From positions 13,206,001 through 13,270,000 of the forward strand of contig OZ116701.1 in assembly GCA_964199315.1 (NCBI GenBank): a stretch of 64,000 nt of DNA, read 5' to 3'. Source of the stretch: Orbicella franksi. Lineage: Eukaryota. A program made the position numbers and the translations under genes. Positions 22,495 through 64,000 of the stretch are shown one piece after another. Below the pieces are notes generated by a model, which did not search any database, was not told where the DNA came from, and worked only from the letters and a program-made list of their open reading frames with translations. Each line of letters opens with the position of its first letter. Position 1 is the first letter of the stretch.

Positions 22495-24923
22495 GTAAGC
22501 TCTTTTCTCCTTGAGGATAGTGTCCCATGGGCCGCTGACTCCAACGTAAAACGACAGGGTATGTATTATAATTGAAAAAATGCTATCCTCTCGATAAAAG
22601 CTTTAATTAGAAAAGTTTTGTTGGAATCAAGCGAAACAAAATTAAAAATCTCAAGATCGCCGTTTATCGCACGCGGGTGGAATGATCCTTTAATCGCATG
22701 TACAGTACTATACCGTGTAAGGGAAATTTGTCGAACTGCGTCGAAAAATTACGAAATTGTGCGAATCATTTATAGATCTACAAGTGTACTATATATATTT
22801 CGTGGAAATTTCGCTGAGCTAGACGGAAACGTTCTGCCAAAGTTCCCAAAGTTACATATTTTCGTTTGTTTGAACCAAACAAAGCTCCTTATAATGCACT
22901 ATACGGGAAGGCACCACAAGAAAGTACCCTAGCTACCTCGGGCTTGAGTTATACGAATGAGTAAGGATTTGGTAAGGATCACGAGTTGAATTGTAGAGAG
23001 GGTGGGTAAAACTGTCAAAAAAATCTTTCAAAATTCCTCAAACAGACTCACTCAACGACTAATGAATGGAAGTATTTTTAAGCGCCAGTAATTAGAAATT
23101 GAACATGGCCGGACAAAATCTTTAACTGAAAATATCGTCCAAATGGCTCAAGAGAATATGATCTTATCAACGTGATATCTTTGTGGATCTCTCTTTTGCT
23201 TCAGTTAAACATAGGTCATCTATTGGAAAAACCTCAAGAATACATTGGCTTGATCTTAATAACGCGAAAAAATCCGCTCTTGCCGAAAAGAGGTCAAAAG
23301 ATGGAAATCTAGTGCTTCTATGCCTAACCCGTCTAGAATTTTACATAGCTAGCTGGAAAATAGTGTAGAAGTAATTTTAACTTTTTAAAATTTTCATCTC
23401 GTGCTACTTGTTTAGATTCGAACTCATGTGACTGTTGTCCTGGTCCAAGTTCCTGCAAAGAGATTTATGAAAAAGATCAGTAAGTTATGAAGAAAATATT
23501 TAGAAGATACTGCGGTAGAATTCAAATAGGTTTTTAGTGTACCATGTTCCTTATTTTGGGTTAACAAGAAGAAAAAGAGGAAAAAGTATTCTTTGAGACA
23601 CCAAGAATTTTCATTTGTTTTCTTTTTATCGGGATCTACATAAGCTCCTATAGCTGATGCAATACATTGAAAATACCTAAGACCCAGTGAACTTTACATG
23701 CAATAATTACATACACCATGATAAACAAATAAAATACAGTATTCGAATTTAATTTAAAGGCCAACCGAAAACAAAGCATACATGCTGCAGCTTGGCAGTC
23801 AAAAGCTTCCTGTCTACTGTCACATGACTGGAGCTGATCTTGGCGACTGCGGCCATGGAGGATGGACGCTGGTCATGAAGACTGACGGCTCTAAGGTAAT
23901 TTAAACTCCAACGTTTTATAAAGGGCTAAACGCCATCACTGCTGTAGATACAACCGTCCTCAAAGGCATCATGTTAAAGGAACGTCTCAAGACATCATTG
24001 GTTTGGGATAACACGCGAAGTTTTGGCGACACCTGTAATATGGAAAGGGGTCGACGCGAATTCCAAATAATTCAAATTGGGACGTTCATTTTAGAATGTT
24101 AGCCCTTAACAAGTCTGTGACAAAAAAAAATTAAGCCTCTTGTTACAGAAAAAGTAAAGCTTCGAGACCAAACGAAGCTGGACGTTTTAACGCCTACCCA
24201 TTTGTTACACGAAAGTATTTCATAGAATCGAATGAAACCACCTAGACTAGTCAAAACGATTTGTTCAAAAGTGTTTTTAACAGTACTCAGAAATAACCGG
24301 ATCAAAATTAAAGAAGAAAGATAAATGAAACTATCATTAGCGTGCCCTAAAATGCAACACCAAAATCTCACAAGGCATCCTAACCTTTTTAACTTATCTT
24401 GCAGCGGACGTTTCATTACGATTCGCCCTACTGGACCAACAAGAGAGAATATGGCATCCCCGAAGGAGAAACAGGCTTAGACCAGGAAGAAACAAAGCTA
24501 CCAACCTACTGGAACACACCATTTACCAGGATCTGTCTCGGCATGAAGATTGGACACGAGACCAGGTTCATTCTTCTCAACAAGAAGGCTAGCTCGTTGT
24601 ACGCCCTGATTCAAGATGGTAAATACCGCCCCACCTCACTGGTTCGTGACGCATGGAAGTTTTTGATCGGCCCTGAGGCCTCCCTGCAGAGCAACTGCAA
24701 CAGACAAGGTTTCAATGTTATAGCTGGCAACTCCATTAATGGAAAGGCACGAATTGGTTATATTGCTAATCAAGAAAATGATTGCGATTCACCCGACTCC
24801 AGGATTGGGTTTGGCACCGGAGGGAACAACGACGACTCCAACACGTGTGGAAACGAGGCTACGCATCATCCAGACAACGGAGACAAACACATCAAGGCCA
24901 TGGGGTACATCTTGGTCCAGTAA
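22495..24923 (+). CDS. USOMP5: USOMP5-like (fibrinogen-like/FReD-type) protein copy 1, join(22495..22558,23416..23479,23760..23895,24405..24923); start exon unresolved
   Basis: Phase-compatible exons: VSSFLLED...NVKRQ | [18 protein letters not shown] | ...VYCHMT...[13 protein letters not shown] | RTFHYDS...[18 protein letters not shown]...[13 protein letters not shown] possible upstream exon lies at 20351-20462. Confidence 0.85.
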
Positions 24924-30952: not shown

Positions 30953-32658
30953 GTTATTTCTGTTGATCGTGAGGTTAGTGTCACATGGGCCAATCACTAC
31001 AGAGTAAAACGACAAGGTATGTAATAATAATCGCCTCAATAAACAATGGAGAAGAAGAAAAGTTCTTTGTTTTCTTGTTTTCTTGACTCGAACGACGCAA
31101 CACGAAACTTGATGCTAGAAGTCTTCGAGTCTCGAGGATCGATGATCGCGTCGTTCGAGTTTCGAATGACTGTCAATTTACATTTGACCGGTGCTGTACT
31201 ACCCACTATTCTCTAATTCCATTGTGTTCGTTTGTCTCAAGAGCGGTTTCATGAGGGTCATCGTAATCATCCTAGACTGCTACCTGGGGTAGTGAGCGTT
31301 TAACAAATTTTTTAACGTTGTAGTCGTATAGATAGCTTTAAAATTGTTCATTTCTCATCTCCTTGTTTAGATTCGAACTCGTGTGACTGTTGTCCAAGTC
31401 CTGGTCCGAGGTCATGCAAAGAGATTCATGACAAATACCAGTAAGTTTTGAAGAACGTGTACACAGGTAGATCTGCGCTTGGAATATCGGCCCGAGAAGA
31501 CCAAGGGGCAACATTCTCCAAGTATGTTCCAGAACAAACATGGCTAACAAGAGATTTATAACCTGACTGAAAATCTGCAAAAAATTCCACGATCACAGAT
31601 TGGAAAGACCCCACAGTTTACTCAACAAAGTTCACCGCAACAGCGCGCAAAATGACGCGTACTGTCCAATTACAAGCATGACGCGTACACTGTCCAATTA
31701 ATGCTGAAATCGGGCTGCTGATAGCCAATGACGTTCGAGAATTTTTATAGTTTTGATTAGTGTTGTAATAAACGAAGGTACCTTACACGTAATGAGCTTT
31801 ACTTCCAGTAGTTAAAAGCTAATGCAGTATTTGAAATTCAATTAAAGAACAACCGAAAACAAAGCATACACGCTCCAGTTTGGTAGCCAAAACGTTCCTG
31901 TCTACTGTAGTATGGATGGAGTTGATCTTGGCGACTGTGGCTGTGGAGGATGGACGCTGGTCATGAAGATTGACGGCTCTAAGGTATTTTAAACGCCAAA
32001 GTTTCATAAAGAGCTTAATGCATCACCACTGACATCTGGGGATCTTGGTGGAAGGCCCCATAACGTTATTGTTGTGGAATATACTGTACACGTATTTTTG
32101 CCGTGTTCTTTGAGTTGACTCTTCAATTTGATCTTGCAGCGGACGTTTCATTACGATTCGTCTTACTGGACTGACAAGAAAGCATATGGCATCCCTGAAG
32201 GAGAAACAGGTTTAGACCAGAAAGAAACAAAGCTACCAACCTACTGGAACACACCATTTACCAGGATCTGTCTCGGCATGAAGATTGGACACGAGACCAG
32301 GTTCATTGTTCTCGAAAAGAAGGCTAGCTCGTTGTACGCCCTAATTCAAGATGGTAAATACCGCCCCACTTCACTGGGTCGTGACGCTTGGAAGAATTTG
32401 ATTGGTCCTGAGGCCTCCCTGCAGCACAATTGCAACAGAGAAGGTTTTAATGTTATAGCTGACAACTCCCTTAATGTTAAGGCACGAATTGGTTTTATTA
32501 CTAATCAAGAAAATGATTGCAATAGCCCTGACTCCAGGATTGGGTTCGGCACCGGAGGGAACCAAGACGACTCCAACACGTGTGGAAACGAGGCTCTATA
32601 TAGTCCAGACAACGGAGACAAACACATCAAAGCTATGGGGTACATCTTGATTCAGTGA
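30953..32658 (+). CDS. USOMP5: USOMP5-like protein copy 2, join(30953..31016,31371..31440,31848..31983,32140..32658); start exon unresolved
   Basis: Same exon architecture as copy 1 (VISVD...HYRVKRQ | [20 protein letters not shown] | ...[13 protein letters not shown] | RTFHYD...MGYILIQ). A candidate ATG exon at 28127-28202 is out of phase by one base in an A8 run. Confidence 0.85.
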
Positions 32659-44273: not shown

Positions 44274-45536
44274 GTAAGCTCTTTTCGTCTTGGGGATGTT
44301 GTCCCGAGTGTTGGTGCGACTTCATGCAAAGAGATTCATGACGAATACCGGTAAGTTTTGAAAAAATGTATACATGTAGATCTGCGCTTGGAATATCGGC
44401 CCGAGAAGACCAAGGGGCAAAATTTTCCTAGTATGGTCCAGAACAAACATTAATAAGAGATTTATAACATGACTGAAAATATCTAAAAAAAAATTCCACG
44501 ATCACAGACTGGAAAAACACCATAAACTTCCATCCCGCAATTCTGAGATTCGATTCGAGCAATCTGATTGGTGGATTTTAGTTATCAGCCCTCTGATTAG
44601 TAGTGTAATAAAATGAAGGTACCTAACACGTGATGAGCTTTACTTCCAATAGTTATAATAGCATGTAAAAAAAAAACAAATACAATACAAATTAAAAGTT
44701 AATGCATTATTTGAATTTTTTTTTAAAGAACAACTGAAAACAAAGCCTACATGCTCCAGTTTGGCGGCCAAAATGTTTCTGTCTACTGTAGTATGGATGG
44801 AACTGATCTTGGCGACTGTGGCTGTGGGGGATGGACGCTGGTCATGAAGATTGACGGCTCTAAGGTATTTTAAACGCCAAAGTTTTATAAAGAACTAAAC
44901 GCCATTACCACATCTGGGGATCTTGGTGGAACGTCCCATAACGTTATTGTTGTGGAAAACACTGTACATGTACTTTTGCCGTGTTCGTTGAGTTGACTCT
45001 TCAATTTGATCTTGCAGCGGACGTTTCATTACGATTCGTCTTACTGGACCGACAAGAAAGCATATGGCATCCCTGAAGGAGAAACAGGTTTAGATCAGAA
45101 AGAAACAAAGCTACCAACCTACTGGAACACACCATTTACCAGGATCTGTCTCGGCATGAAGACTGGAGACGAAACTAGGTTCATTCTTCTCGGCCAGAAG
45201 GCCAGCTCGCTCTACTCCCTGATTCAAGATGGTAAATACCGCCCCACTTCACTGGGTCGTGACACTTGGAAGAATTTGATCGGTCCTGAGGCCTCCCTGC
45301 AGGGCAACTGCAACAGAGAAGGATTTAATGTTAAACCTGACGATTCCGTTCATTCTAAGGCACGAATTGGTTATATTGCTAATCAAGAAAATGATTGCAA
45401 TAGCCCTGACTCCAGGATTGGGTTCGGCACTGGAGGGAAGCACGACGACTCCAACACGTGTGGAAACGAGGCTACGTATGATCCAGACAACGGAGTCAAA
45501 CACATCAAGGCCATGGGGTATATCTTGGTTCAGTGA
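44274..45536 (+). CDS. USOMP5: USOMP5-like protein copy 3 (chimeric), join(44274..44350,44729..44864,45018..45536)
   Basis: Fused exon VSSFRLGDVVPSVGATSCKEIHDEYR, followed by intact 136-nt and 519-nt exons. The homologous upstream exon 41594-41705 contains TAA, so function is uncertain. Confidence 0.75.
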
Positions 45537-47436
45537 AGTGAAGCAAACTGAAGTGATCATGAACTGAACTTCCAGTGATCAGCGTGAAATGTTATGATTG
45601 ATAGTTCATTAAATTTTAAACCTTACAGTACAAAACTAAATTATGGGTTATGAATTAAGGCTATACATAACAGATTAAGAAAATAAAAAAATATATTACA
45701 AAGGATTCAAATTGACTATCGTCTTATTTGCAGTGGCTATATATGAAACAGTTCTGCATTCTGTTTGTTCTACATGTAGACAATTGAAGGCGGTATACGT
45801 CATCGGCGGAGGTAAAAATGTCGTAGCTTGTGATCGTGGTTATTAAAATAGGGCCTTCCAAAAAAAAAACTCTACTTTTTCAATGTTGAGGACCGGGCCT
45901 ATAGGAAATGGTACTCATTTATAGGAAGTGGTTACATGTAGTTTCTAACTGAACTGCAATGATGGGTCGGAAGCATGTGACACTCTTGGTTGATTACAAA
46001 CTCGACAATGACGTTATACGTATTGAAAAGCTGACGTCTCGATGTTTAGCCCTACGAGCCCACCACTCAACGACTGCATACAACCTTCCGGCCCTCCCTC
46101 CTCCTCTCAGCCTTTCACCTTTCACCTACCGATCCCTTTCCTTACATATGTCACTCTTTACCTACCCGTCCCTGTCCAGTTCTTTTGTTATTGTCGTCAG
46201 ACTCGTCCCGCGATGTGCATTATAATTTCACAAATATTTTCAGATAAGTCACTTAAGGGACTTCTCTGTTAGAGACGTGATCTCTTTGTTAGGGAGGTCA
46301 TTTGTGCTTTAAAATCTAGAGAAGTAATCAAATAATGCACATACTTATATACTTTATTGAGCAGCAATTGAACCTCCTTAATGGGGGCTTCACGAACACT
46401 AAATTTAAAAGAGATTCCCACATTTACAGTAATAAGATATATTGCAGTTTAATAAGAGCTATAAGATAACAACATAAATTTGCATCAAAATCACTCTAAA
46501 AAGCGTTAAAAAGAAATAGTTAAGATGCTAAGAGTCCAAGAATTTCTTAACAAGAGCTTATGTTTCAAGGTCTTTTTGAAAAATGTCACAGTAGGCTATG
46601 GTGTTGTTCGTTTTATTTGTTTTTTTTTGTTTGTTTGTTGTTGTTGTTTTTCGTTTTTACGTATTAGTCTTTGTTACTTTCGAGGCGAATTTTATTTGGT
46701 GATGCAGGCAGCGTTCTCTTGTGCTGCAGTGCTATGACCGCTTTGTCGCTCAGAGAGGTTGCGTGGATGTCGTAAGTGTTGTTGCGATTGCTGAAATAAG
46801 GAGTTGTTACTTGCGTCGCCGTGACAAGATCCCTCTAGTTCACCCTACAAAACGCGTGATATTGTTGTCAGCAAAACATGTTTAACTAAAAAAGGAGTGT
46901 TAGCCTTCGGATACAAACAAGGATTTAGCCTGAGCAATGTGAAGACTATGAAATAAAAACGAGACTATAGCTAATAGTTACAGCAACAGGTTGGCGTTGC
47001 TACATTGAACACTTGACAAATTGCATATAAGCATATAAAATATCCGTTTTTTAGGACAACGATTTATGCGGGCAACTATCGGACTAAGTAAGCCCTCGAG
47101 AGAAAAACTGAATTGTTTACATATTACACCGGACAGCTCAACCAGTGCCAATATTGAAAAACAAGAAAAAAATTCTTCTAAAACTCAAAAGAGCAACAAA
47201 AGTGTTTTCTATTTCTTAAACTAAAGCAAAATCCAAATAATTAAAAGGAACAGAGTGATCTGAATCAAGCACTCACTTATTTCTAAGACACGAGCGACGC
47301 AGGTAAAATGTAACTAGTAACGGATTGGGTTGCAAGGTGTCTACTTCCTTTCTATTCCTGGTTACGCACGAGAGGCATTCACCGGAAATGACGCCATGGA
47401 CATGACGCAGCGTAAATCATCCATGTTTATAACATC

Positions 47437-50400
47437 ATGTCGGAAGAAGGCGCAGATGAAACGTGCGATCAAACAGGACACAACTCTAGACAAGTAAGTT
47501 ATTCAGTCGATTGAAACCAAGCCTTTCTCTAAATTACAAATCTGATGGGCTTTACATAACACATTTGCGGACCCACAGCAACACGAAACATCACGCGACA
47601 TCACGCCACCAAAACAAAAGTAAACATTTCAAGCATTACTGTTGCGATATTAAACCTCAAACCCGATCATATTGCTCATGAATCGTTAGAAAAATCCAAC
47701 GTTTGACTTGATTCTAATGAAGCTGTATGACGAGAAACAACTTTGCTAGTATAGTTAAGGTACTATGTTTCTCATGCTGTATTTGCAAGAGAGGTTTACT
47801 TCGGCAGCCATATTTACTTCGTGACCACTGGACCGCAAATCATGTAGGAAAACCATTTACACAACTAGTGGCTTCATACAGGAATTGCACCTCGCTAAAA
47901 TGCACTCCAGTTTAATAGCATAAAAACCACTTTGGTTAGCTTAACAGCACTGCGGTCAGCCTGACTAACGCTTTATGATCCAGTTAGCTTAGGTTAATGC
48001 TGACTTACAAGGAATACACTATTAATACTGAACTCTATATGATACTTTCTTGTACTTACACGTTGCTACATGCTTTACACAGAATTAATAACTAAATTGA
48101 GCTGTGGACAACTGACGGAGCTTAAAGCGAGAAATAATTGAGATTTTGTCGTTTAACAAGTGTTGCAATGCCGTCTGGAAAGATATTTGGATCCTTTGCT
48201 GTTATTTATTGTTCTAAGAGAAGGGTCCAATATTGCCTGTCCCTACAGACAATTATAATTTTTGTTATTGTCTGATTGTCCTACTAAGATACACACAATA
48301 AAGGGAGTGGGGTGGGGAAGAAAAATCTTTGATAACTTTTCCAATATTTAAGTAAAAGCCTTCAAACTTGTCGGCATATAAAGCTGAAATTTGTCAGGAA
48401 ACAATTTATTATGACATTTCCTTGTTCATGTACTTGTAACTTCATGTTTACATGGCAAAAAAGTTTGACAGTTTTCCTTTTATTTCAAAATATGGAATAA
48501 CCTTGTTTTTATTAACAAAATTGTACACCCAGGTATTAGCAGTAGCAGCAAATTAATGCTGGGGAGGTTGTGGCCCTGCTAGGTCAGTAATTATAATTGC
48601 AAAAGCACTATTAAACCTTTAGATGGCTATTAAGATATGATTTATGAATCAAGGAGATAAACTTTGCAAGAACTTATTGCAGACATTTGAACTAAACATA
48701 TTATGCAAGGTGGTGAAATATAAATACACACTGTAGTGGTTAATGAGAGCCACCCTAATGAAATTAGTGTTAGCTTTNNNNNNNNNNNNNNNNNNNNNNN
48801 NNNNNNNNNNNNNNNNNNNNNNNNNNNNNNNNNNNNNNNNNNNNNNNNNNNNNNNNNNNNNNNNNNNNNNNNNNNNNNNNNNNNNNNNNNNNNNNNNNNN
48901 NNNNNNNNNNNNNNNNNNNNNNNNNNNNNNNNNNNNNNNNNNNNNNNNNNNNNNNNNNNNNNNNNNNNNNAAGATTATGAGTGCATTCGGCCTTAAATGA
49001 TTTCACTAGCTGACTTTCAACCTCTGTCTATAGCTAAAATCAACATTTTTCGTCAACAACGAGGATTTATACACATACATATCATAGTGTCAAAGTTCAT
49101 GCCAATGAACAGGTCCCCTGTATAAACTACAATTTGTTGATACATTGTGTGACAGCGCCAGTTTCCGCAGACTCACAAAAATATTTACATTATTTCGTGC
49201 TAAATATTTTCCCATGAACTGGTAATCTTTAAGCGTAAAAAGCTAATTTGAAAAAGTATATATTTTTTACGTACATTGTTTTAAGCTGGGAGCAGAAATA
49301 TAAGCAAACATTTGTAATCGCACACTTGTTTATCGTAAACAAACTCTGTGCGACTGATTCGAATATTTCCTCTGATGAATGAGAGTAGACAGCATGTTTA
49401 CATTGTCCTCCCTTGGTTCAGGCTCACTTTTCTGGATCTTACCTTTAGAGTACTTTTCTACTGATTCCAAACTACATTTGACTGGATAAAGACTGAGCTA
49501 TCTGTCGTGACTGGAACTAAGTAGCAAGTGCGATCAAACTACAGCCAATGAAATATAACTGTTCCCATGGTTAACATCCCAAAGCCAAAGCGATTCAAAG
49601 TCCTGTTCGTGAGCAAGTATATTAAACTACAAAACCACGCGGTAGTCTCTAGCTTTAGAAATCTGCTTTACAATGCTCAGACTTGCTCAGACTACCACAG
49701 AACCACAAGGTGCACGATAGTCTTTGCGCATATGACATAACATATGATGCCAGTCAATTAATGGCCCAGAAAATGCAGAAGCTCAACAAAAAAGTCTCAA
49801 AAGAAGTCACCCTTAAAACCACAGGACACCGAAGATTATGAACTATGTTCTGCAAAAGCGATTTGTAAACATAATTGGACTTATTCTTTGGAGTACAATT
49901 CAGGAAGTAATAGCGCAAGTAATTTCAAAATTGGACAAGCACAAAGCATGACGCCGATTTGAAAGTACGAGCATGATTACCTCCTGAATTGTACGAAATA
50001 AGGTCCAATTACTAATTAATCGCATCGATAACAAATTTACACATTAAAGAAGTCTTTTGAGAACTTAGTTTGAGCGAAAGAGCGAGTGGCACTTTCTATA
50101 AGTTTTAGGACATATCCAATTACGAGTATCCAATAACAAAAAGTTGTAATTGGACAGCCATGTGATCATGTGCCGATTACGTGACAAAAAGGCACCCAGA
50201 GAACCAATCACAGTCGACAATTGTGTAATAGATATTATCAAAGGTGTAATCTGGTGAAACACTATTGGTTACAATCTGAATTTCATTATGATATGTACTG
50301 CATCATCAGGAACCAAAATATATAATTGTCTCTGCTATTATAGCACAATTACCTTTATAAATTACAGACAACAACATTTTCCTGAAGATTTTAGCCCTTA

Positions 50401-51467
50401 ATCTACAGTCCAGCTAGTTATGGGAAAAAAAACAGACTTCTTGCTCAGGGTCTCAACAGAATTAACAAGGAAAACATAGTAAGGAAAAGTCAGGTTAATC
50501 CTAATGAAGTTGTATATTCCTTGTATAGGAAGATAAAGCTTCAGATAAAGGAAAAGAATCTGTGCTTCATCATGATGCTGAGTGTGGTCCTTCAACAAAA
50601 ACAAGTACTTCAGCAACCAGTGCTGGTTCCCACAATGAAAGCAGTCCTCTAGTGAAGACTTCAGACACTTCTAGTAGTGAAGACAATCCTTCAGTGAGCA
50701 GTAGGGACACTTCCACTAATGAGGACAAGCCTGCAGTGAAAAGTAACGACACTTCCAGTGATGAGGATAAGCCTCTAGCGAACAGTAACAGCCCTTCCAG
50801 CAATGAGCACAATCCTCCAGCAAGCAATACGGACACTTCCAGCAATGAGGACAAGCCCTCAGTGAACAGTAACGACACCTACAGTAATGAGGACAATCCT
50901 CCAGGGAACAATAAGGATATTTCTTGCAATGGCGACAATCCTTCAGCAAGTAGTAACAACACTTCCAGCAATGGGGAAAATCTTCCTGTAAGCAATAAGG
51001 AGACCTCCAGCAATAGGGACAATCCTCCAGCAAGCAGTAAGGACACTTCCACCAATGAGGACAAGCCTCCAGTGAACAGTAAAGACGCTTCCAGCAATAG
51101 AGACAAACCTCCAGAGAGCAGTAACAATACTTCCAGCAACGAGGACAAGCCTTCAATGAAGAGTATGGACGCTTCCAGTGTCAAGGATCAGCCTGTAGTG
51201 AATCATGCAGACACTTCCAACAATGAGCGCAATCCTCCCGTGAACAGTAAAGACAGCTCCAGCAATGACGAGAGGCCGTCAGTAAACAGTAAGGACTCCT
51301 CAAGCAAAGGAGACAAGCCTCCAAGGAGAAAAAGGCGATCTGAAAAATCTGGATATTTTGGAGGCTCCATGTTTTCATGGCTACAGAGTGCCGGAAATGC
51401 TGCCATTGGTGAGATTACTGAAGGGATTGCAGCCATAGGAGCAAAGATGTTTGTATGTCTCAATTAA
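47437..51467 (+). CDS. Acidic-repeat/ISG12-tail protein A, join(47437..47493,50529..51467), about 331 aa
   Basis: Exon 1 MSEEGADETCDQTGHNSRQ|gtaagt (phase 0) follows a CpG-rich region with CCGGAAAT and TGACG motifs. The phase-0 acceptor ttgtatag| opens about 16 x 14-aa repeats, then RRKRR and an ISG12 C-terminal piece (MFSWLQSAGNAAIG...AKMFVCLN). The link crosses an N gap. Confidence 0.65.
48778..48970. other. Assembly gap (Ns)
   Basis: Run of N. Confidence 1.
50640..51320 (+). repeat. Coding tandem repeat, 42-bp/14-aa unit (consensus near TSSNEDKPPVNSKD)
   Basis: About 16 diverged units can be read in the ORF 50562..51467. Confidence 0.9.
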
Positions 51468-51470
51468 TAA

Positions 51471-51738
51471 TTATCTCCTCAGAGCTTTATTATCTAGCTC
51501 TCTGCCCGCACTGCAGGCCTATGACGCTCCCTCATCATAGGCCTGCAGTGCGTGCAGAGAGCTAGATAATAAAGCTCTCCCTCATCATAGGCCTGCAGTG
51601 CGTGCAGAGAGCTAGATAATAAAGCTCTCCCTCATCATAGGCCTGCAGTGCGTGCAGAGAGCTAGATAATAAAGCTCTCCCTCATCATAGGCCTGCAGTG
51701 CATGCAGAGAGCTAGATAATAAAGCTCTGAGGAGATAA
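51471..51738. repeat. Foldback element: one inverted arm followed by 4 tandem 50-bp copies of the complementary arm
   Basis: ttatctcctcagagctttattatctagctctctgcccgcactgcaggcctatga, then units starting at 51529, 51579, 51629 and 51679, closing with gaggagataa. Confidence 0.95.
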
Positions 51739-52216
51739 TATTATTGCTTCCATAATTTTAATTGGCTTTAAGTATAGAATAGTTAAGTTAATCACTGGAT
51801 TACTACATTCTAAAATAGAAAACGTATACCGCACACGTAGATTGAGACAATTGAATTTACTTGAAGTTCAAAAGAGAAAAGAAACTGTGTAAGTGAGAGG
51901 GACTAAACAGGGGTATATCATATATTAAAGCTGTTCAAAAGTTATCGGCACATACCAATTTAGTTGGTGGAAAAATGTTGAACCAAACTCAAGTGATATT
52001 TTTTATGCAACTATTGACCAAGTATTAACCAACATCTCTGACTAATGTAGTATTTGCTGGCAGTTCCTGTTATTAGTAAAAATCAAGAAAAGTTTCTTCA
52101 TATTTGCTTAACCTGAAATTCGCTTTGATGTAGCATGACATCCAATTCTGTGCCTCTGCATAAGACCAGAGGTTGTTGTTCTTGGATCGGGAATTGATAG
52201 TGTTATTACCCTGTAG

Positions 52217-55200
52217 GAAGAACCAGAAGAACCAGAAGAACCTAAACCACATCAAGATAATGCTAGATGCAGTCCTTCAGCAGAGGCAAATGCTTCTGAA
52301 TCACCAACAACTGCTCCATCCCACAATAGGGAGAATCCCTCAGTGAGAAGTAAGGACACTTCTAGTGATGAGGACAACCCTCCAGTGAACCGTTTGGACA
52401 CATCCAACCATGAGGGCAAGCCTCCAGGGAATGGTGAGGGCACTTCCAGCAATGGGGAGAAGCCTTCACTGGACATTATGAACACTTCCAGTATCAGTGA
52501 TGAGGACAGCAACCCTCAAACAAAAAAAGGTAACATGGAATGAAAGAGTTTAAGAATGAATGAGTTGCCAGTAATCGGATACCCGTGTTTGCGCGAAGAA
52601 CTCTGGGATCGTCAGGGGCAAACATTGCTAGTCGCTAGAAGGAAATGTATGACGAAAAGTTGTTTCGAGGTACAAGAAAACGATTTTTGAGACAGATCAA
52701 CGCTTTTTCGCCGTCGTTTTTATCGCGAATGGATTTGGGCAATGTTGATATGTGGAATATGTAAGTTTTTGTTTGAATAACCGTGAAATATGTGACAAAA
52801 TCTACCGATAAACTCCGTTGTTTGCGTGAGGTTTATTGTGAAATTTACATCGCGTAATGGTCTTAAAATATTACAAAATTAATTAGGCATAAATCGAAAG
52901 AAAATAACCCAGGGAAGCCTTTTAAGTTGTGTACAGGCTACTTTTGGCTTATTTGAAAGCTCAGTCATACAAATAATACTGGAAATAAGCCCGGTGGCGA
53001 TCATTGTACTGTCTGGGGTTGATTTAATGACAAATGAGTCCGCGCGACTCATGCTTTGTGACTACTGTGTTGCTCAAAGTACGTATTTCAGTGATTTTCC
53101 TTTTCTGTAACAGATCAAGGGTGGCTCCTTGAATATATCTCTGAGTATTTGTATTTAAAAGTGCCATTTGTGCGTAATTATGCTCTCCAGAGTTTGGTTT
53201 TGACGGTTGAGTGAAATTACCCGACACGAAGGGTGGTAATTCCTTCTGCAATTTTCGATTTCTGTTTTAGAGCTTCTTTTCTGTCTTTATATTTAACTCT
53301 CGCGATCAGGCGTGTATTTAAATTCTCAATATTCTCTTCAATGTATTTCACAATAAACCTCACGCAAGCAAAAGGGAGTTTATCGGTAAATTTTACCACT
53401 TATTTCACGGTTATTCAAACAAAAACTTACATTTTCCATGTATCAACATTGCCAAAATCCAATCGCAATAAAGCAACGGCAAGAAAGCGTTGATCTGTCC
53501 CCAAAACCATGTTTTTGGGCGTCGAAACAACTTTTCGCTATACATATCCTTCTAGCCACTTGCAATGTTTGCCCCCTGACGATCCCAGAGTTCTTTACGC
53601 AAATACGGGTATCAGATTACTGGCAACTCATTCATTATCTAGCTCTTTGTACGCATTGCAGGTCTATAATGTTGTTGCCGGTGCACTGTTTGCATACATT
53701 GTGAGTCTAAGGCAAGAGGCCACTGTTAAGTTCCAGATCTTTTGTCATTCCTTGATCGTTGGAAATTTTAAGGTAGTGGAAAAAATTCTACTTGGCAAAC
53801 AGTTCCACGGAGATTGTTTCAGATTGTTAGCAAGAAGATTTGCTTGAAAACCAAACTTTTGGACAAATATATTTCAGATTTTTCTCTTGTTTTTATTTTG
53901 CTCTTTTATCTCATCAATTCTATTTCAATGGTTTGTCCTTTCTGTGAGGATCAGAAGGTAACCAAGTGTATGTCATTTAATCTGTTTGCTATTAGAATTA
54001 AATGCAATAATCAGTTTTCAGGTTCTCAGTTGTAAGAAAGAAAGTTATTTTCAAACTCTGCCCATTTCCAGTGATTCCATTGTCATAATTAGGTCAAGCT
54101 TAATTTTCCTTAACATCAAATTGTTATTCATTCATTTACTTAAAAAGCTTAGAACAACATATACCTTCCAACCTTTTCCGAGTCGCAGGCATGAGATCTG
54201 TTTTCTGGAAGTTCTACTGTAGCTAGATTTTGAAGATCTGATCATATCCAAAAGACCTCTGAAGATCTCAGAGGATGTTCCAAAGATTTCCAAAGGGGTT
54301 TCATATATATTTCCTGGTTCCAGGCACAGCTTCCAATGCTTTGCTAAACATATTAACACAGCCAGATTGTTCTCTTGAAAATTGTAAAATTGAGGATGTG
54401 TTCTATCATTTACATAGACTTTACCTTTCTTCCATTTGTTTGGGTTCACAGATATTTTTTGAAAATGTGTAAGTGAAAGCTCTTTCAGCTAGGTGTGCAA
54501 TTTTAATTCATAAACGTGAGTTAAGGTGTGAGATCAAAGTTTTTGACCTGCAGGCATGGGACTCACCAAAGTTAAATTTTGGAAAATATTTGCGAGCCAG
54601 GTGCCATAAGCATATTTACGTGTACACTCTGCATTAAATTTCGGTTTAAATACATGCTTGTCCTGATACGGCTGAACCTCAGCTTTTTGAAAGGCCTCCT
54701 ATTGATCTTGCACGGATGGCAAACATCAAGCAAAAGGCCCGGGGGGGGGAGGGACTCCAAAATAAAAAGGACGGGGGTGCTTGTCGGAAATTTTGAAAAG
54801 AACCCCTTAAAGGTACCCAGATTCTGTTTGTTGGCGTGGCTTAATTTTTTTTTTCCCCTAAGAGGTACCATTTCTTACATAGCACAATATAGATCTCCTG
54901 TCATATTTTTTCTGCTCAATACCCTAAAAGGTACAGCAAAAGCTCCGCCTGTGAACCTTTTGAGGCTGAACACCCTAAGAGGTACCAAAACTGCTATTTT
55001 TTAACCCCTAGAAGGTACGACGAGCACCCCTGTCATTTTTAAATGGAATCTCCCCTGGGGGATAAAGTAGATTCAGCGTCAAATCATTGGAGTGAGTATA
55101 ATGGTTCGTGTAGAAACTAAAAATATGGCAATGTAAACACATTATTTCTCTCAGTCGACTGAGTCATTTGCTGTCAAAAAATTGAGTGTAAGTAAACATT

Positions 55201-56433
55201 ACAGAAACATTTGCAACTAAAAAATGCAAACTAAAATGGTCATTTTGGTGTCGTCCTTATTTAGGCGAATGAAAAGAAAAAAGTTGTGTAAGATTCATAA
55301 AGGGGATAAATAGCTACTTTTCGCTCGCGGGTGTCAGGTCAAAACGAAATGATAAACATGTCATTGCACTCTTCCGAAAAGCTGTCTGTCACCAGTCGGT
55401 TATCATCAACAGTTTTCTGAATCGCCAGTGCTATAGCACAGTATGTCAAATATCACACGACAGACGTTCTAGGAACAATGGCTGCTCGATGATTGTTGTC
55501 GGACAAACATCTTGATTTAACATTCGTCTTTCCAATTAAAACCTTTCGAGACAACATTTTGACACATTCGGTGGAAACTGTGTCTGGCTAAATGAGAAAA
55601 AAAAGGTTGAAAACATTGTCTACTCACCAAGATATCCAAATCGAATCTCAGCCAAAGCCGGATTGGGGAAAACGAGTCTGCAATGTCCCATGTTTTGACT
55701 AAGTAGCGGCCAGCAGTTTCTGTGTTAGAGATCACTAACATTCGTAGCGCTGCTGTAGCGCCATGTTTGTGCTATAACTCGAATTTTTGTTAACTCGAAA
55801 TGTGGCATTCAACGAAACGGTATCATTTATAAACTGTAAAAAGCAGTCATTCTCATAGAACTGGCGTGAAAGAACCCTAGTAAATCTGGAGGTGAACTGG
55901 AGTAAAAGCTAGTAAATCTCGAGGTGTTTTCGGCCTCATTTCGTGAGATTGCTCCGAAAGCCTCCGAAAAGTCACATAGTACAGTGACTGGCCTAAGGCA
56001 GTAAGCACAAAAATTGTGTCCACCAACACCCTTTAGATTGCAAATTTCAAACACAATAAGGCCTAAGCACTACCGCCTCTCATCATTAAACCTTAGTACC
56101 CGCCCTCGGCTATTACACTTCTCTAGGTTGACCTACAATTTGTATAGAGCAGCGTATACTGTTGAACCACCCTTTAACTTTCTCTTGTATTTTTCAGACC
56201 TCTTGCGCTATGCAGCTGTCGGAGTAGCAGCTGGTACTGCCGCTGTGGTTGCTGCTCCACTGGTTCTTGGTGCTGCTGGTTTTGCTGGTGCAGGTGTTGC
56301 TGCTGGTTCCATTGCAGCGGCAACTGTAAAGACTGGAGGTTTGTTTGCAATGGCTGCCGGCAATGCTGCCATTGGTGGGATTACTGGAGGGATTGCAGCC
56401 TTAGGAGCAAAGATGTTTGTATGTCTCAATTAA
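52217..56433 (+). CDS. IFI27: Acidic-repeat/ISG12 protein B, join(52217..52529,56198..56433); needs a phase-0 upstream exon (47437..47493 fits)
   Basis: Acceptor ctgtag|GAA; 4-5 of the same 14-aa repeats; phase-1 donor g|gtaac joins ttttcag|AC to give DLLRYAAVGVAAGTAAVVAAPLVLGAAGFAGAGVAAGSIAAA...AKMFVCLN. Confidence 0.7.
52558..53633. mobile_element. 1.08-kb TIR element, copy 2 (same family as 38558-39694), intronic
   Basis: GAATGAGTTGCC...GGCAACTCATTC with AT duplicated at 52556-57 and 53634-35; same Penelope fragment inside. Confidence 0.85.
54738..55060. mobile_element. MITE with CCCGGGGG..GACTCC-type ends and internal 'cctaagaggtac' repeats
   Basis: cccggggggggagggactcc ... aatctcccctgggg; repeated (c)ctaa(g)aggtac motifs. 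Confidence 0.55.
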
Positions 56434-56773
56434 TAATCGTTTAATGTCTAATTAATAAGAGAAATCTTTTTATGAGTTTACATTTCTCATACATTTTTTT
56501 GTCTTGAAATGATTCAGTATTAACAATGCAAAGATATGCATAGGAGTATTATAATGTATCTTGGCACCTTCACTCGGAGGGTGGGGCTTAATTAAAAATC
56601 TAACGTTTAAGAGAGCTTATTAGAAAGGTACATGAGCTAAATAGGGCTTTCACGATACATGATGTTGATGCTTAGCTAAGTGCTAAGAGATTGTGATTAA
56701 TTGATTACAAGTAAAGAGTTAACTTCAAGATTTACGTTTCGTTAATTTATACAAGCCTAAATTCAATTTATAG

Positions 56774-59630
56774 GACAGTTTTGTAGATATCAAGCTGTTG
56801 ATATGTGGAAGTGGCAGTGAAGCCCACGCATTTGCCGGTATTGCCTCATCTGTGAAAGGAACAGATGTTCGAGTTTTTAGTTTACACCAAGATGAAGCAG
56901 ATTACTGGTTTGCTGCAATGCATAAAAACGACCTCAAGATTACTTTTCATCGAAAGGGAGAAGAACCAACTTGTATTACATCTAGACTTCCGCTAGCAAC
57001 GAGTAACCCAGAGGATGCCATGCAAGATATTGATATCGTGGTCTTTGTGCTGCCGGCATTTGCCCATCAAGTTCTTCTGTATACCTTGAAACCTTACTTC
57101 AAACCTGGCACAATAATAGTCGGCCTACCAGGTGCTCCAGGGTTTGAGTACCAGGTACTTCACGTGCTGGGTGAAGTAGGACAGCAATGCACGATCATGA
57201 ATTTTGAATCATCACCCTGGGTCTCCTGTATCTCTGACTTCAGTGTTGGGTGTGAGGTTCTTGGCACCAAGGAGACCCTATTGGGAGCCATCAAGGTAAC
57301 AGACTCTCACTTCAAATACGTACCCGTGATATTTGTTGGGTTGCAATCATTACAGACTGCAGAAAGTTTGCGGTGCAGACAACAGATTGAAAACATAGCC
57401 TCTTTTATACCTTCAGATACAAAACCAATAACACCTTTCGATTATATAGATTGGCTGTATTTTCCATAATCAAAGTGATATAGTTTCACCACAATCGTTT
57501 TGAACCAACACGCGCAGGCAAAAATTAGCTATTTACTCCCTTTTTGAATCTTACTCAACTTTTTTCTTTTCATTTTTTTAGCCAATATGACCATGTTAAC
57601 GAAATTGCAATTGCAAATGTTTTCGTAATGTTTACATATACTCAATTTTTTGACCGCAAATGATTCAGTCGAGTGAGGGAAACATTACATTCACAATGTC
57701 ATATTTTCAGTTATCCGTGAACCATTATACTGTACTGATATCACTGGTATGACGTTGAATCACTCTACACGACTGGTAAACAGCTTTGCCCCAGAAAATT
57801 TCTTCCTCTCTTTGCTTCGCGAGATCGTCCACTTTGTTTGTTGTTCTTTGTAATTTTGTTTCTGTTTGTACTTTTTTCACAGCAAGGAAAAGGTGTTGCT
57901 CCCAAGAAAGACCCAGCTTCCACACTACAATATCTCCTGGGTCCCCTCCCTAAACTTAACGTCTCTGGTCACCTATTGGGCGTTCAGTTGATGAGCGTCA
58001 ATGCGTACCTGCACACGTCAATACTATATGGTCAATGGGAGGGGTGGCAGGGGAAACCAGTTGATGAACCACCTCTGTTCTACAATGGCCTAACTGAGCC
58101 AACAGCGGACCTGCTGTCCAGTATATCAGATGAGATTGTAAGCATCGCTAGGGTCATTGAGTTGAAGACTGAAGCTGACTTGTCTCATGTAAGATATTTC
58201 TATGAATTTATTTACAAAAACTCATCTTTTTGTTCTAATGTTACGTTTCATCATTTGGAGTGGTTATGACAGGTACATACAACCAAAAGAACGTTTTAAT
58301 GTTTGGAAGGGAGGGAAAGTAATTTAGTTAAATTTCTTCTGTACAACCGGCTTAGCTGATAGAAAAAATAATCAAGGCAGGCCTGGCAGGAGACAAGAAA
58401 GACGACCAGATAGAAAAGACGAGCAGACAGACAGACAAGCAGACAGATGTGTTTATAAGTAACTACCGACGTAATCATGTTGTTCACTGTCGTGAGCTAT
58501 CATCCAACCGGTCTGATACAGGAAGCAGACTAAATTTTTGGTCGAGAGGCTTAGGGCCTACCTTTGTTCCTTTACGTCTTAAAGAGTAGTTGTCCCTATC
58601 AGCAGTTACAAACTGGTGAGTTATGGCTGCAGAGGCCTATGTGGCATCCATCAGTGCGCCTATCTGTGGCACGGCGAACTAACCAGTATTTGCTCCACTG
58701 GAAGGCTTCACAGCTTTTCTTTAATTCAAAGATTTTTCAGTCGTTATTGATACCTCGACAGGGTAGGGAGGTATTGTTTGGGTCCCTTATCAGTCTAAAA
58801 CTCGCAAGCGAAACACCGTGACATGATGCCTCTAAAAGATCGTGAATAGCCTGGTAACGACACGTATTTTAGTACGTAATCTTGTTTGCTTAATTTTTGC
58901 CATTTGTAAATATAATTACAAAATATCAATCTACTCAGTCTCCAAGTAAGGAAGCCCAGGGAAGCCAATAAGACTTACATAAGGACTACCTTGAAGATAC
59001 CTAAGACTTCACTAAACAATAAAAATGCTATCATCGGAACACAAAATGATCATAAATTTAGATAAAAAAATAATTAAGCAAAGCTAAACGCGCAAAAGCG
59101 CAAAAGCAAAGAAAGACAAAAAAGGCGAAAAGAAGCACACACACAACCACACTAAGAGAAGTTAAATATACTTATGCCATGAAAGATCAATTAAGTAAAG
59201 AGGTGAACACAGGTTCTGGTTATGCTTTTTTTCTGACATTAACTCTCTACAGGTTGTACACATTCATCTATGGCTTGTGCGACGTTATTCTCATGACATC
59301 TCAAATAAGTCGACCCTTTACAAGGCAATACAGACCAATGCTGCCTTTCAAGGAATCAAGCATCCAGTCAAGACAACTGAAGACGGCAAATTCGTGCCAG
59401 ATTTCACGCACCGCTACATCACGGAGGATGTCCCATATGGCCTGGTCGTCATCCGGGGTATTGCAGAAATTGTCGGAGTTCAGACGCCGAATATTGACAA
59501 GGTGCTTACATGGTGTCAGGAGAAAATGGGCAAAGAATATCTCGTGAACTCAAAACTGCAAGGAAAAGATGTTGGCTTATCCACAGCACCGCAGAGATAT
59601 GGATTCATAACTCTTGAGTCCATCTTGTGA
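56774..59630 (+). CDS. odh: Opine dehydrogenase (octopine/tauropine/strombine DH family), join(56774..57295,57883..58188,59253..59630), about 401 aa; ATG exon not identified
   Basis: Three phase-0 exons with no stops. Family motifs: IxGxGxxAH, VLPAFAH, GLPG.PGFE, FESSPW, EVLGTKE, YLHTSILYGQW, PPLFYNG, PDFTHRYITEDVPYG, W.QEKMGKEY, PQRYG. Confidence 0.93.
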
Positions 59631-63012: not shown

Positions 63013-63096
63013 ATGGCGGCAAGAGAAGATGATATTGTGGCGGGTGAAATGGAGGATCAGACATCCGACCAAACAGGACAAAACTCGGCAGAACAG
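63013..63096 (+). CDS. First coding exon of a further gene paralogous to the 47437 exon; continues beyond the window
   Basis: atcATGGCG...MAAREDDIVAGEMEDQTSDQTGQNSAEQ|gtcagt, phase 0, after a CpG-rich region. DQTGQNS matches DQTGHNS at 47437. Confidence 0.6.
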
Positions 63097-64000
63097 GTCA
63101 GTAATTCACAAAATAACCTTCAAACCTTTTGTAATCCAAAATTCAGAAATACTTTTAAAATTAAGAGGTACCCCGATACCAAATTGTCTAGCTAACTTAA
63201 AAATTTATTGTAAGCTTACGTGTCAAGCTGTAGAACGAAATATTAAGCTTAATATCATGTAATATTCTAAGCGAGTTCAGGCTTATTTTGTTTTAGTTTT
63301 TTTGTGAATTCTATTTGACTCAATGCCTAATAACTTTGAATACTACCCGGGAATGTGGTAAGTAAAACGTTTTTGAAATCCATCGTTTGCCTTTAGCCAG
63401 ACAATAGGCCACTTTCATTACATTAAAATTCAGCTTGATCACAAACAAAAGATAGGAATAAACATTTTCACTTTGTTACCTTTCTTTGTGTCCTTAGGTC
63501 TCGCTAGGAAGCTGCGTTTTGATGTATAACTTGAAAGTACATGTGTAACCTATTGCTATAGAAATTGTCGGCTTAACTGAGAAAAAGTTAATTTAACTAC
63601 CAATTACGTGCATCATATATCTTCATGTGGAGCTTTTCGTTTGGCGTTCTGCTAAAACAGACTAACAACACAATTACCAGAGCAATATAACGCTATGCAC
63701 AAGATGTATTCATTGAATAACTGTAACCAAAGCTGGATCAACTGGGTAAAATCAGTGCAAGTCGTGGTCAGAAGAAGATATTGATAAATGATAGTTTCTC
63801 ATTGCATCCAAGTTAAATTATGATCGTTTCTTTTGCCTATAGATGAAAGAAAGTCAAACACCCGGGGTCAAACATAAGACCATGCTTTAAAAGAGCAAAC
63901 CTCCATCCACTTACAATTCAAACCTGCCAGCTTTTCAATCAACATTCTTCCAAAAATTTGAATTAGATGTAGATGGAGAATGTAGTAGTAGGCATAAAGC

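Follow-up and report, generated by a model that had tools for sequence, protein, structure and literature searches.

The window analyzed here is a stretch of 64,000 nucleotides from the coral Orbicella franksi (GenBank assembly GCA_964199315.1, contig OZ116701.1, positions 13,206,001 to 13,270,000 of the forward strand). It contains a locus in which one short first exon at 47437 is followed by two paralogous modules, A and B, each combining acidic 14-residue repeats with sequence of the ISG12 family, and then by an opine dehydrogenase open reading frame (ORF). We give about an even chance to the reading that the locus is not a plain ISG12 gene, but a modular transcription unit, with modules joined at phase 0, that also feeds the opine dehydrogenase. 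A and B are probably not simply terminal exons. Exon 1 would serve three bodies at phase-0 acceptors, namely A (50529), B (52217), and the dehydrogenase (56774). Both modules end in KMF/VCLN (the slash marks an exon boundary throughout). If the transcript is read four codons further to a stop and polyadenylated, a small acidic protein of the ISG12 type would result, which in the case of B is a membrane form and in the case of A is weakly hydrophobic and carries Glu substitutions. Splicing at the GTATGT that stands at this codon boundary would give in-frame joining, ultimately into the dehydrogenase.

One first exon, two modules, and a dehydrogenase

Exon boundaries were read from window positions 47000-57000 and the ORFs therein, and each was verified by script. 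The locus was compared with two relatives: L007, an ungapped 156-kb contig of 50x coverage from a related coral (ENA ERZ26858540), and L003, a 2x contig that spans the A tail, the spacer, B2, and B3. Ratios of nonsynonymous to synonymous divergence (dN/dS) for exon 1 and the modules were obtained by the Nei-Gojobori method between the window and L007. The features of the locus are as follows.

47437-47493, + strand: exon 1, ATG at 47437, 19 codons (MSEEGADETCDQTGHNSRQ), donor GTAAGT at 47494, phase 0
48778-48970, no strand: assembly gap (N) inside intron 1, the single N run of the window, its letters neither filled nor inferred
50529-51467, + strand: module A exon, phase-0 acceptor tatag/GAA, 312 open codons, TAA at 51465-51467
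51324-51338, + strand: RRKRR basic patch of module A, GRKRR in L003 and L007
51453-51458, + strand: candidate 5' splice site of module A, GTATGT, with the hexamer and position of the donor in contig L016 (see below), putatively used
52217-52529, + strand: B2, acidic exon of module B, acceptor ctgtag/GAA at phase 0, donor AAAAAG/GTAACA at phase 1
56198-56433, + strand: B3, exon with a shortened ISG12 domain, acceptor ttttcag/AC, stop at 56431-56433
56419-56424, + strand: 5' splice site in the last ISG12 codons of B3, GTATGT, phase 0, GTA-NGT across loci
56774-57295, + strand: first coding exon of the opine dehydrogenase, phase-0 acceptor, no start codon, beginning DSFVDIKLLICGSGSEAH, dN/dS 0.18
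57868-58212, + strand: middle exon of the opine dehydrogenase (approximate limits), PF02317, residues 165-279 of the solved enzyme 3C7A
59283-59630, + strand: last exon of the opine dehydrogenase (approximate start), PF02317 at E 1e-23, residues 282-395 of 3C7A
63014-63097, + strand: paralogous first exon of a following unit, ending DQTGQNSAEQ/GTCAGT at phase 0; this unit runs off the window

The order exon 1, A, B2, B3 was also found in L007, with the same splice-site dinucleotides as in the window and with both frames intact. The recurrence of arrangement, splice sites, and open frames indicates more than chance. L007 matches were collinear on both sides of the assembly gap, and its exon 1 lies 4.2 kb 5' of A in the same orientation. 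As the gap falls within intron 1, which carries no coding frame, scaffold continuity and not the reading frame is at issue there. The exon 1 orthologue (L007 3701-3757) has the identical donor GTAAGT and a dN/dS of 0.72 over its 19 codons. Paralogues of exon 1 were found at 63014-63097 in the window and at 12197-12253 in L006, a contig from a more distant coral. No further exon-1-like sequence was found between A and B, the sole other copy in the window being the one past the dehydrogenase gene. A single phase-0 first exon followed by two paralogous phase-0 modules, as proposed in an earlier sequence-only reading of this DNA, could thus be read directly. The lengths to the donor are 924 nt for A and 534 nt for B2 plus B3, each a whole number of codons, so any combination of modules remains in frame.

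Immediately 5' of the exon 1 ATG, the block 47381-47436 (+ strand) is nearly identical in L007 (ACCGGAAATGACGC...CAGCGTAAATC.TCCATGTTT), and the adjoining sequence is unalignable. This block is a candidate core promoter or 5' untranslated region (UTR). A GGAYTGGGTT motif stands about 100 nt 5' of the exon-1 copies, at 47322 and 62960 in the window and also ahead of the L006 copy. The sequence GACGCAG/GTAAAAT at 47296-47310, about 130 nt 5' of the ATG, is kept in L007 and may be a promoter element or the splice donor of an untranslated leader exon.

The constraint on the parts is consistent with the composite gene. dN/dS was 0.13 for B3, 0.21 for the A tail, and 0.18 for the dehydrogenase exon, and the repeats, at 0.7-0.8, have changed length by in-frame indels.

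A probable splice donor in the last codons of both modules

Both modules end in AAG ATG TTT GTA TGT CTC AAT TAA, in which GTATGT begins at the codon boundary past Phe. The shared ending AKMFVCLN had been noticed before; it also holds a 5' splice site that the earlier reading missed. In module A the donor hexamer is GTAAGT in both L003 and L007. Across loci the residue following Val varies (Cys, Arg, or Ser) and its codon is always NGT, which means that donor positions +5 and +6 are preserved. The stop past the donor shifts among species, giving CLN-stop, RLT-stop, a 6-residue extension, or extensions of about 37 and about 130 residues. A variable residue encoded by an invariant NGT codon, together with a shifting stop position, fits a real donor.

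The opine dehydrogenase ORF lies 340 bp 3' of B3. Its first exon reads DSFVDIKLLICGSG from the acceptor YAG/GAC at 56774 and corresponds to residues 3-170 of the octopine dehydrogenase (OcDH) of Pecten maximus (PDB 3C7A, 404 residues), residue 6 of the exon aligning with residue 3 of the scallop enzyme. Together, the three dehydrogenase exons give a full-length match to the solved enzyme, including the N-terminal GxGxxA nucleotide-binding motif. Five loci share the acceptor and frame of the first exon, whose other two frames are closed. From the acceptor to the GxGxxA motif there was no ATG in any of them (the window, L007, L005, and two L006 copies), nor was a conserved ATG mini-exon with a usable donor found in the 340 bp between the ISG12 stop and the dehydrogenase acceptor. 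The dehydrogenase must therefore borrow its start codon from an upstream exon, either exon 1 or an ISG12 module.

The junction itself was found in L016 (protein P0018), a 1144-bp Joint Genome Institute (JGI) contig from another coral, in sample 3300008040, which we take to be a metatranscriptome. This contig carries acidic, ISG12, and dehydrogenase exons without the two introns between them. Its breakpoints coincide exactly with the phase-1 acidic/ISG12 junction and with ...TTGTTT/GACAGG..., in which the GTATGT donor is joined to the conserved acceptor. The corresponding ISG12-to-dehydrogenase junction of the window preserves the reading frame (KMF/DSFVDIKLLICG). A direct splice from exon 1 to the dehydrogenase acceptor, both of phase 0, could also occur. 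Because the shared donor was used in L016, A and B may be internal cassettes besides, or instead of, terminal exons. Of the alternative terminal exons proposed earlier, the paralogous modules behind a lone exon of the exon-1 type stand, but their terminal status is put in doubt by the shared donor.

Several observations weigh against a composite gene. L016 retains the end of intron 1 before its acidic exon, and a 1-nt deletion throws its dehydrogenase part out of frame, with a stop in addition. Given this damage, L016 shows the junction and not a productive fusion; coming from another coral or a paralogue, it may represent a retrocopy or a pseudogene that is transcribed. In L017 (10318-15517, from a more distant coral), the dehydrogenase seems to be without its first (Rossmann) exon, and exons 2 and 3 and the upstream ISG12 exon are intact, so the ISG12 part can be maintained alone. 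VCLN is fairly well conserved over many coral paralogues, which suggests that these residues are also translated. When 20-mers across the junction of exon 1 with A or B2 were sought in JGI contigs, no true junction was found; there were eight matches, all confined to the 20-mer and hence chance matches. Poly(A) signals in the A-B spacer are not conserved, L007 having one ATTAAA and L003 none. The frame evidence for A is likewise moderate (P about 0.07, see below), and the case for A as a coding exon that is being maintained is of medium strength, not overwhelming. An unfused ISG12 product with VCLN at its end is also likely.

Much of this evidence would also suit a locus in which exon 1 is spliced to one of two alternative terminal modules (A, or B2-B3), each with VCLN-stop and its own poly(A) site, the dehydrogenase being a separate gene and read-through splicing being noise. 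The phase-0 compatibility of exon 1 with both acceptors, the lack of an exon-1 copy between A and B, the conservation of the arrangement in L007, and the wide conservation of VCLN agree with it, as do the broken, out-of-frame dehydrogenase part of L016 and the ISG12 exon kept in L017 without dehydrogenase exon 1. We nevertheless regard it as unlikely. A separate dehydrogenase gene would be one without an ATG in five loci and without a conserved first exon of its own in the 340 bp. The donor hexamer is preserved despite amino acid change, and the stop position past it is not conserved. The four AATAAA signals past A in the window all lie inside a species-specific insertion (51470-51739), and poly(A) signals past A are not conserved. 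Past B3, the window has a single ATTAAA and L007 has none.

Module A as a probably maintained exon

The array of module A occupies 50664-51323 (+ strand) and comprises 15.7 copies of a 42-bp (14-aa) unit with 70% matches (Tandem Repeats Finder). The repeat is acidic and composed of Ser, Asp, Asn, and Pro, with the consensus peptide DTSSNEDNPPVNSK. Behind the basic patch follows a truncated ISG12 tail of 37 residues (51354-51464, + strand; YFGGSMFSWLQSAG...IGEITEGIAAIGAKMFVCLN), with IGEITEGIAAIG at 51405-51440 and AKMFVCLN at 51441-51464. These results bear out the earlier description of about 16 repeats, RRKRR, and the C-terminal part of ISG12 with two Gly-to-Glu changes, the tail being the last third of the domain. 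The Glu residues replace Gly64 and Gly61, the latter being almost invariant across the family, and both Glu are conserved in three assemblies; the L003 and L007 tails read GRKRR...GEITEGIAAIGAKMFVSLN, with the basic patch and both Glu retained.

The L007 orthologue (7946-8839) is an intact ORF of 297 codons with a conserved acceptor. The two arrays are collinear save for three indels, of one unit (42 nt), 3 nt, and 6 nt, all of them in frame. The probability of finding no stop under neutral substitutions was 0.074. dN/dS was 0.80 for the whole of A, 0.21 for the tail, and 2.3 for the unique N-terminal part; the tail is clearly constrained. Between window 51346-51455 and L003 71-180, there was 1 change in about 140 nt and none was synonymous, and the flanks are 15-18% divergent; in L007, the synonymous divergence of the same tail is normal. 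The near-identity in L003 could reflect constraint at the nucleotide level, or a mixed origin of the 2x contig.

Protein collections yielded little for A. In a word-index search the A exon had no matches, and the A tail matched P0031 alone. No full-length A-like protein was found among 1.8 billion representatives, the single call being a 100-aa ORF from L007, and an exhaustive search with A returned P0031 plus repeat proteins of similar composition without an ISG12 part. A search of the ESM Atlas gave low-complexity look-alikes alone (best score 0.76). Gene calls in the collection begin at the first ATG of genomic ORFs, which accounts for the missing full-length protein; its absence says nothing on expression.

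The region past the A stop contains one further feature.

51470-51739, no strand: foldback insertion resembling a miniature inverted-repeat transposable element (MITE), with inverted repeats and four AATAAA, 3 nt past the A stop

This insertion is missing at the orthologous site in both L007 and L003 and is therefore recent. A unit of its foldback array also matches the end (53631-53671) of the foldback element in the B intron.

A could instead be a relic, that is, a degenerating partial duplicate in intron 1 that is never or only accidentally spliced, with exon 1-B2-B3 (with or without the dehydrogenase) alone functional. A dN/dS of 0.80, rising to 2.3 in the unique part, a chance of no stop under neutrality of only 0.07, and the lack of a full-length A-like protein would be expected of such a remnant. 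More distant corals have no A, and a transposon has inserted 3 nt past its stop. However, two species have open frames of 312 and 297 codons with every indel in frame, the acceptor is conserved, and both Glu substitutions are retained in three assemblies. The tail is under constraint, at 0.21 and with 1 difference in about 140 nt of L003 against 15-18% in the flanks, and B2, which is certainly an exon, evolves nearly as fast as A (0.70). We judge a relic quite unlikely.

Module B and the spacer between the modules

B2 contains 4-5 degenerate 14-aa units with 41-43% identity to the A repeats (tblastn, E 1e-16 to 1e-19). Its orthologues are at 9351-9654 in L007 and at about 1059-1363 in L003 (dN/dS 0.70). 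At about 1250, L003 has a one-base insertion that shifts the B2 frame; it is missing from the 50x contig L007 and is probably a sequencing error. B3 carries IGGITGGIAALG at 56371-56406 and ends in AKMFVCLN-stop. Compared with its orthologue (L007 12200-12430; dN/dS 0.13), it differs at 13 of 233 nt, nearly all synonymous, and the B intron is about 17% divergent. The 4-5 repeats spliced to an ISG12 exon correspond to what had been read before, but the B2-B3 junction is of phase 1, not phase 0.

52543-53648, no strand: foldback transposon-like insertion in the B intron, with inverted arms of about 280 nt

In L003 and L007 this element is missing, and the sequences matching window 52557 and 53634 abut.

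In the spacer between the modules, the blocks 51841-51919 and 51953-52032 have 85-93% identity to L007, equal to the conservation of the B2 exon. They may belong to the 3' UTR of A or act as a promoter of B. The second option leads to an arrangement in which B, and perhaps the dehydrogenase too, would be transcribed from a promoter of its own, with an untranslated first exon in the spacer, A and B being adjacent genes and only A using exon 47437. In its favour, the first of the two conserved blocks holds GTAAGT or GTGAGT, kept in three species; against it, that block has no ATG. B2 is open for 90 codons from its conserved acceptor before the first in-frame Met, and out-of-frame ATGs precede that Met. 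The distant corals have one exon 1 for each acidic exon, and the spacer lacks the motif that stands on the promoter side of those copies. A separate promoter for B is thus improbable. A constitutive transcript of exon 1, A (to KMF), B2, B3 (to KMF), and the dehydrogenase, a protein of about 900 residues with two ISG12-like segments, would profit from the phase-0 module junctions, the whole codon counts of A and B, and the perfect GTAAGT donor of A in L003 and L007, but it is without precedent, the in-frame stops four codons past the donor are kept in A in both species, and the ancestral gene has a single module, so that we consider it extremely unlikely.

ISG12 family membership and predicted products

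B3 matched Pfam PF06140 (Ifi-6-16) with 18.3 bits (E 0.0021, profile 3-61 of 84), the A tail with 15.0 bits (E 0.024, profile 51-80 of 84), both under the gathering score of 29.1 bits; the L007 orthologue of B3 scored 18.1 bits. The syntenic ISG12 exons of L005 and L006 scored 59.7 and 61 bits, above the threshold, and B3 is 62-67% identical to the syntenic exons of L005 and L004 (tblastn E 7e-29 and 3e-26). By transitivity and synteny, B3 and the A tail are homologous to exons that match PF06140 and descend from them. In the family alignment, B3 is the ISG12 domain minus about 25 internal residues. The A tail, the last third of the domain, begins at the YGG...FALLQSAG motif, which is partly lost in B3. 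A canonical ISG12 paralogue is present elsewhere in the window, at 3983-4354 (PF06140, E 1.4e-15).

The maximum 19-residue Kyte-Doolittle mean was 2.10 for B3, which is membrane-like, and 1.36 for the A tail, below the usual cut-off of about 1.6. These values are in line with a weakly hydrophobic A form and a membrane-like B form. The predicted products, neither of which would be small, are as follows.

Exon 1 + A: 331 residues, isoelectric point (pI) 4.7, 29 S/T-x-x-D/E sites, hydropathy maximum 1.36
Exon 1 + B2 + B3: 201 residues, pI 4.6, membrane-like domain (2.10)

An AlphaFold2 model of B3 was helical, at low confidence (predicted local distance difference test, pLDDT, 54.9; 27 sequences). 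No signal peptide was found in either predicted product, so the N-terminus should be cytosolic. The polybasic site had been suggested as a protease switch. A furin site is not the first choice for RRKRR, given the lack of a signal peptide and the homologous basic patch in B (TKK, KRK, or TRK). RRKRR is probably a basic patch that terminates the acidic exon and was inherited with it, on the cytosolic side and beside the first helix.

Ancestry and distribution of the modules

The acidic-repeat-plus-ISG12 architecture, which had been called novel in the sequence-only reading, recurs with its exon structure conserved in at least four other coral assemblies (L005, L006, L007, and L016). In the distant corals L006 and L005, one exon 1 is followed by a short acidic exon with 1-3 repeat units and a full-length ISG12 exon, and A is absent. 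The junctions of this three-exon gene are of phase 0 and then phase 1, as in the window. Since these corals have the B-type gene alone, A is a lineage-specific duplicate. B would represent the ancestral form, in which an acidic repeat exon is joined to the exon for the ISG12 membrane domain. Tandem copies of the whole series (exon 1, acidic exon, ISG12, dehydrogenase) occur in the window (where the next exon 1 is at 63014-63097), in L004/L006, and in L017.

The start of the A exon is homologous to the start of B2. The basic patch of A aligns with the A-rich end of B2 and a former donor changed from GT to GC (AAAAAGGTAACA in B2, AAAAAGGCGATC in A), and the A and B3 tails have 95% nucleotide identity over 83 nt. 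The introns ahead of A and ahead of B2 are no longer alignable to each other. In the simplest history, an old tandem duplication of the acidic and ISG12 exons would have been followed by loss of the donor (GT to GC). An internal deletion would then have joined the repeat exon of A, in frame, to the last part of the ISG12 exon, and growth of the array to about 16 units would have preceded the divergence of the window species from the L007 species. Recent concerted evolution might have produced the A/B tail identity, but that identity is 86-96% in every pairing, within and between species, and general constraint fits this better than conversion.

Further upstream, three paralogous ORFs of 174-176 aa (24399-24923, 32128-32658, and 45006-45536) are collinear with the start of L007. 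The one copy searched, 45006-45536, had no Pfam match.

Implications and comparison with known systems

That exon 1 feeds all bodies in the window species, any dominance among the isoforms, and a role of A as modulator of B-type proteins are proposals read from the DNA. A further suggestion, which we hold as tentative and rather doubtful, is that the ISG12 module with its phosphorylatable acidic repeats serves as a swappable N-terminal anchor for the opine dehydrogenase. The use of no module, A, or B, together with the choice of stop or splice at KMF/VCLN, could allow a single promoter to give soluble enzyme, enzyme tethered to membranes, and ISG12-type proteins on their own. Fermentation in corals relies mainly on strombine dehydrogenase, and opine dehydrogenase is the enzyme by which corals survive nightly hypoxia (PMC7669893). 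If the anchor exists, a protein family of innate immunity and apoptosis would be coupled to hypoxia metabolism.

What is new is a conserved coral subfamily of ISG12 that carries a long region of acidic repeats, a recent duplication of a module that led to a truncated, Glu-substituted variant, and an unexpected link between ISG12 and opine dehydrogenase, which is physical and probably transcriptional. If the in-frame junction is productive, the domain combination would be an undescribed one, and annotations of ISG12-like and opine dehydrogenase-like genes as stand-alone genes in corals would be incomplete.

ISG12/IFI27 proteins are small membrane proteins of vertebrate interferon responses, and vertebrate ISG12/IFI6/IFI27 are hydrophobic, with about 100-130 residues and without long acidic tails. 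A literature search for ISG12 or IFI27 in corals yielded nothing relevant. B3 and the A tail resemble the family (PF06140) in their Gly/Ala-rich helices and the GGITGGI motif. In contrast to the vertebrate proteins, the coral domain follows a 19-residue exon and an acidic Ser/Asp/Asn-rich repeat region of 100-310 residues. It also differs from the family in that its exon ends in a splice donor leading to an enzyme gene. The coral dehydrogenase, for its part, resembles the Pecten maximus OcDH, with which it aligns over residues 3-395, with PF02317 and under purifying selection. Unlike the scallop enzyme, it has no initiator codon and begins at an acceptor 3 residues ahead of the start of that enzyme.

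One 5' exon with alternative bodies is known from calcitonin/CGRP, with alternative terminal exons, and from the cholinergic locus ChAT/VAChT, with a shared first exon. The coral locus resembles both in having one 5' exon followed by alternative bodies that encode different proteins. It differs in that its alternatives arose by tandem module duplication, the predicted junctions are all of phase 0, and the modules may also be used as cassettes.

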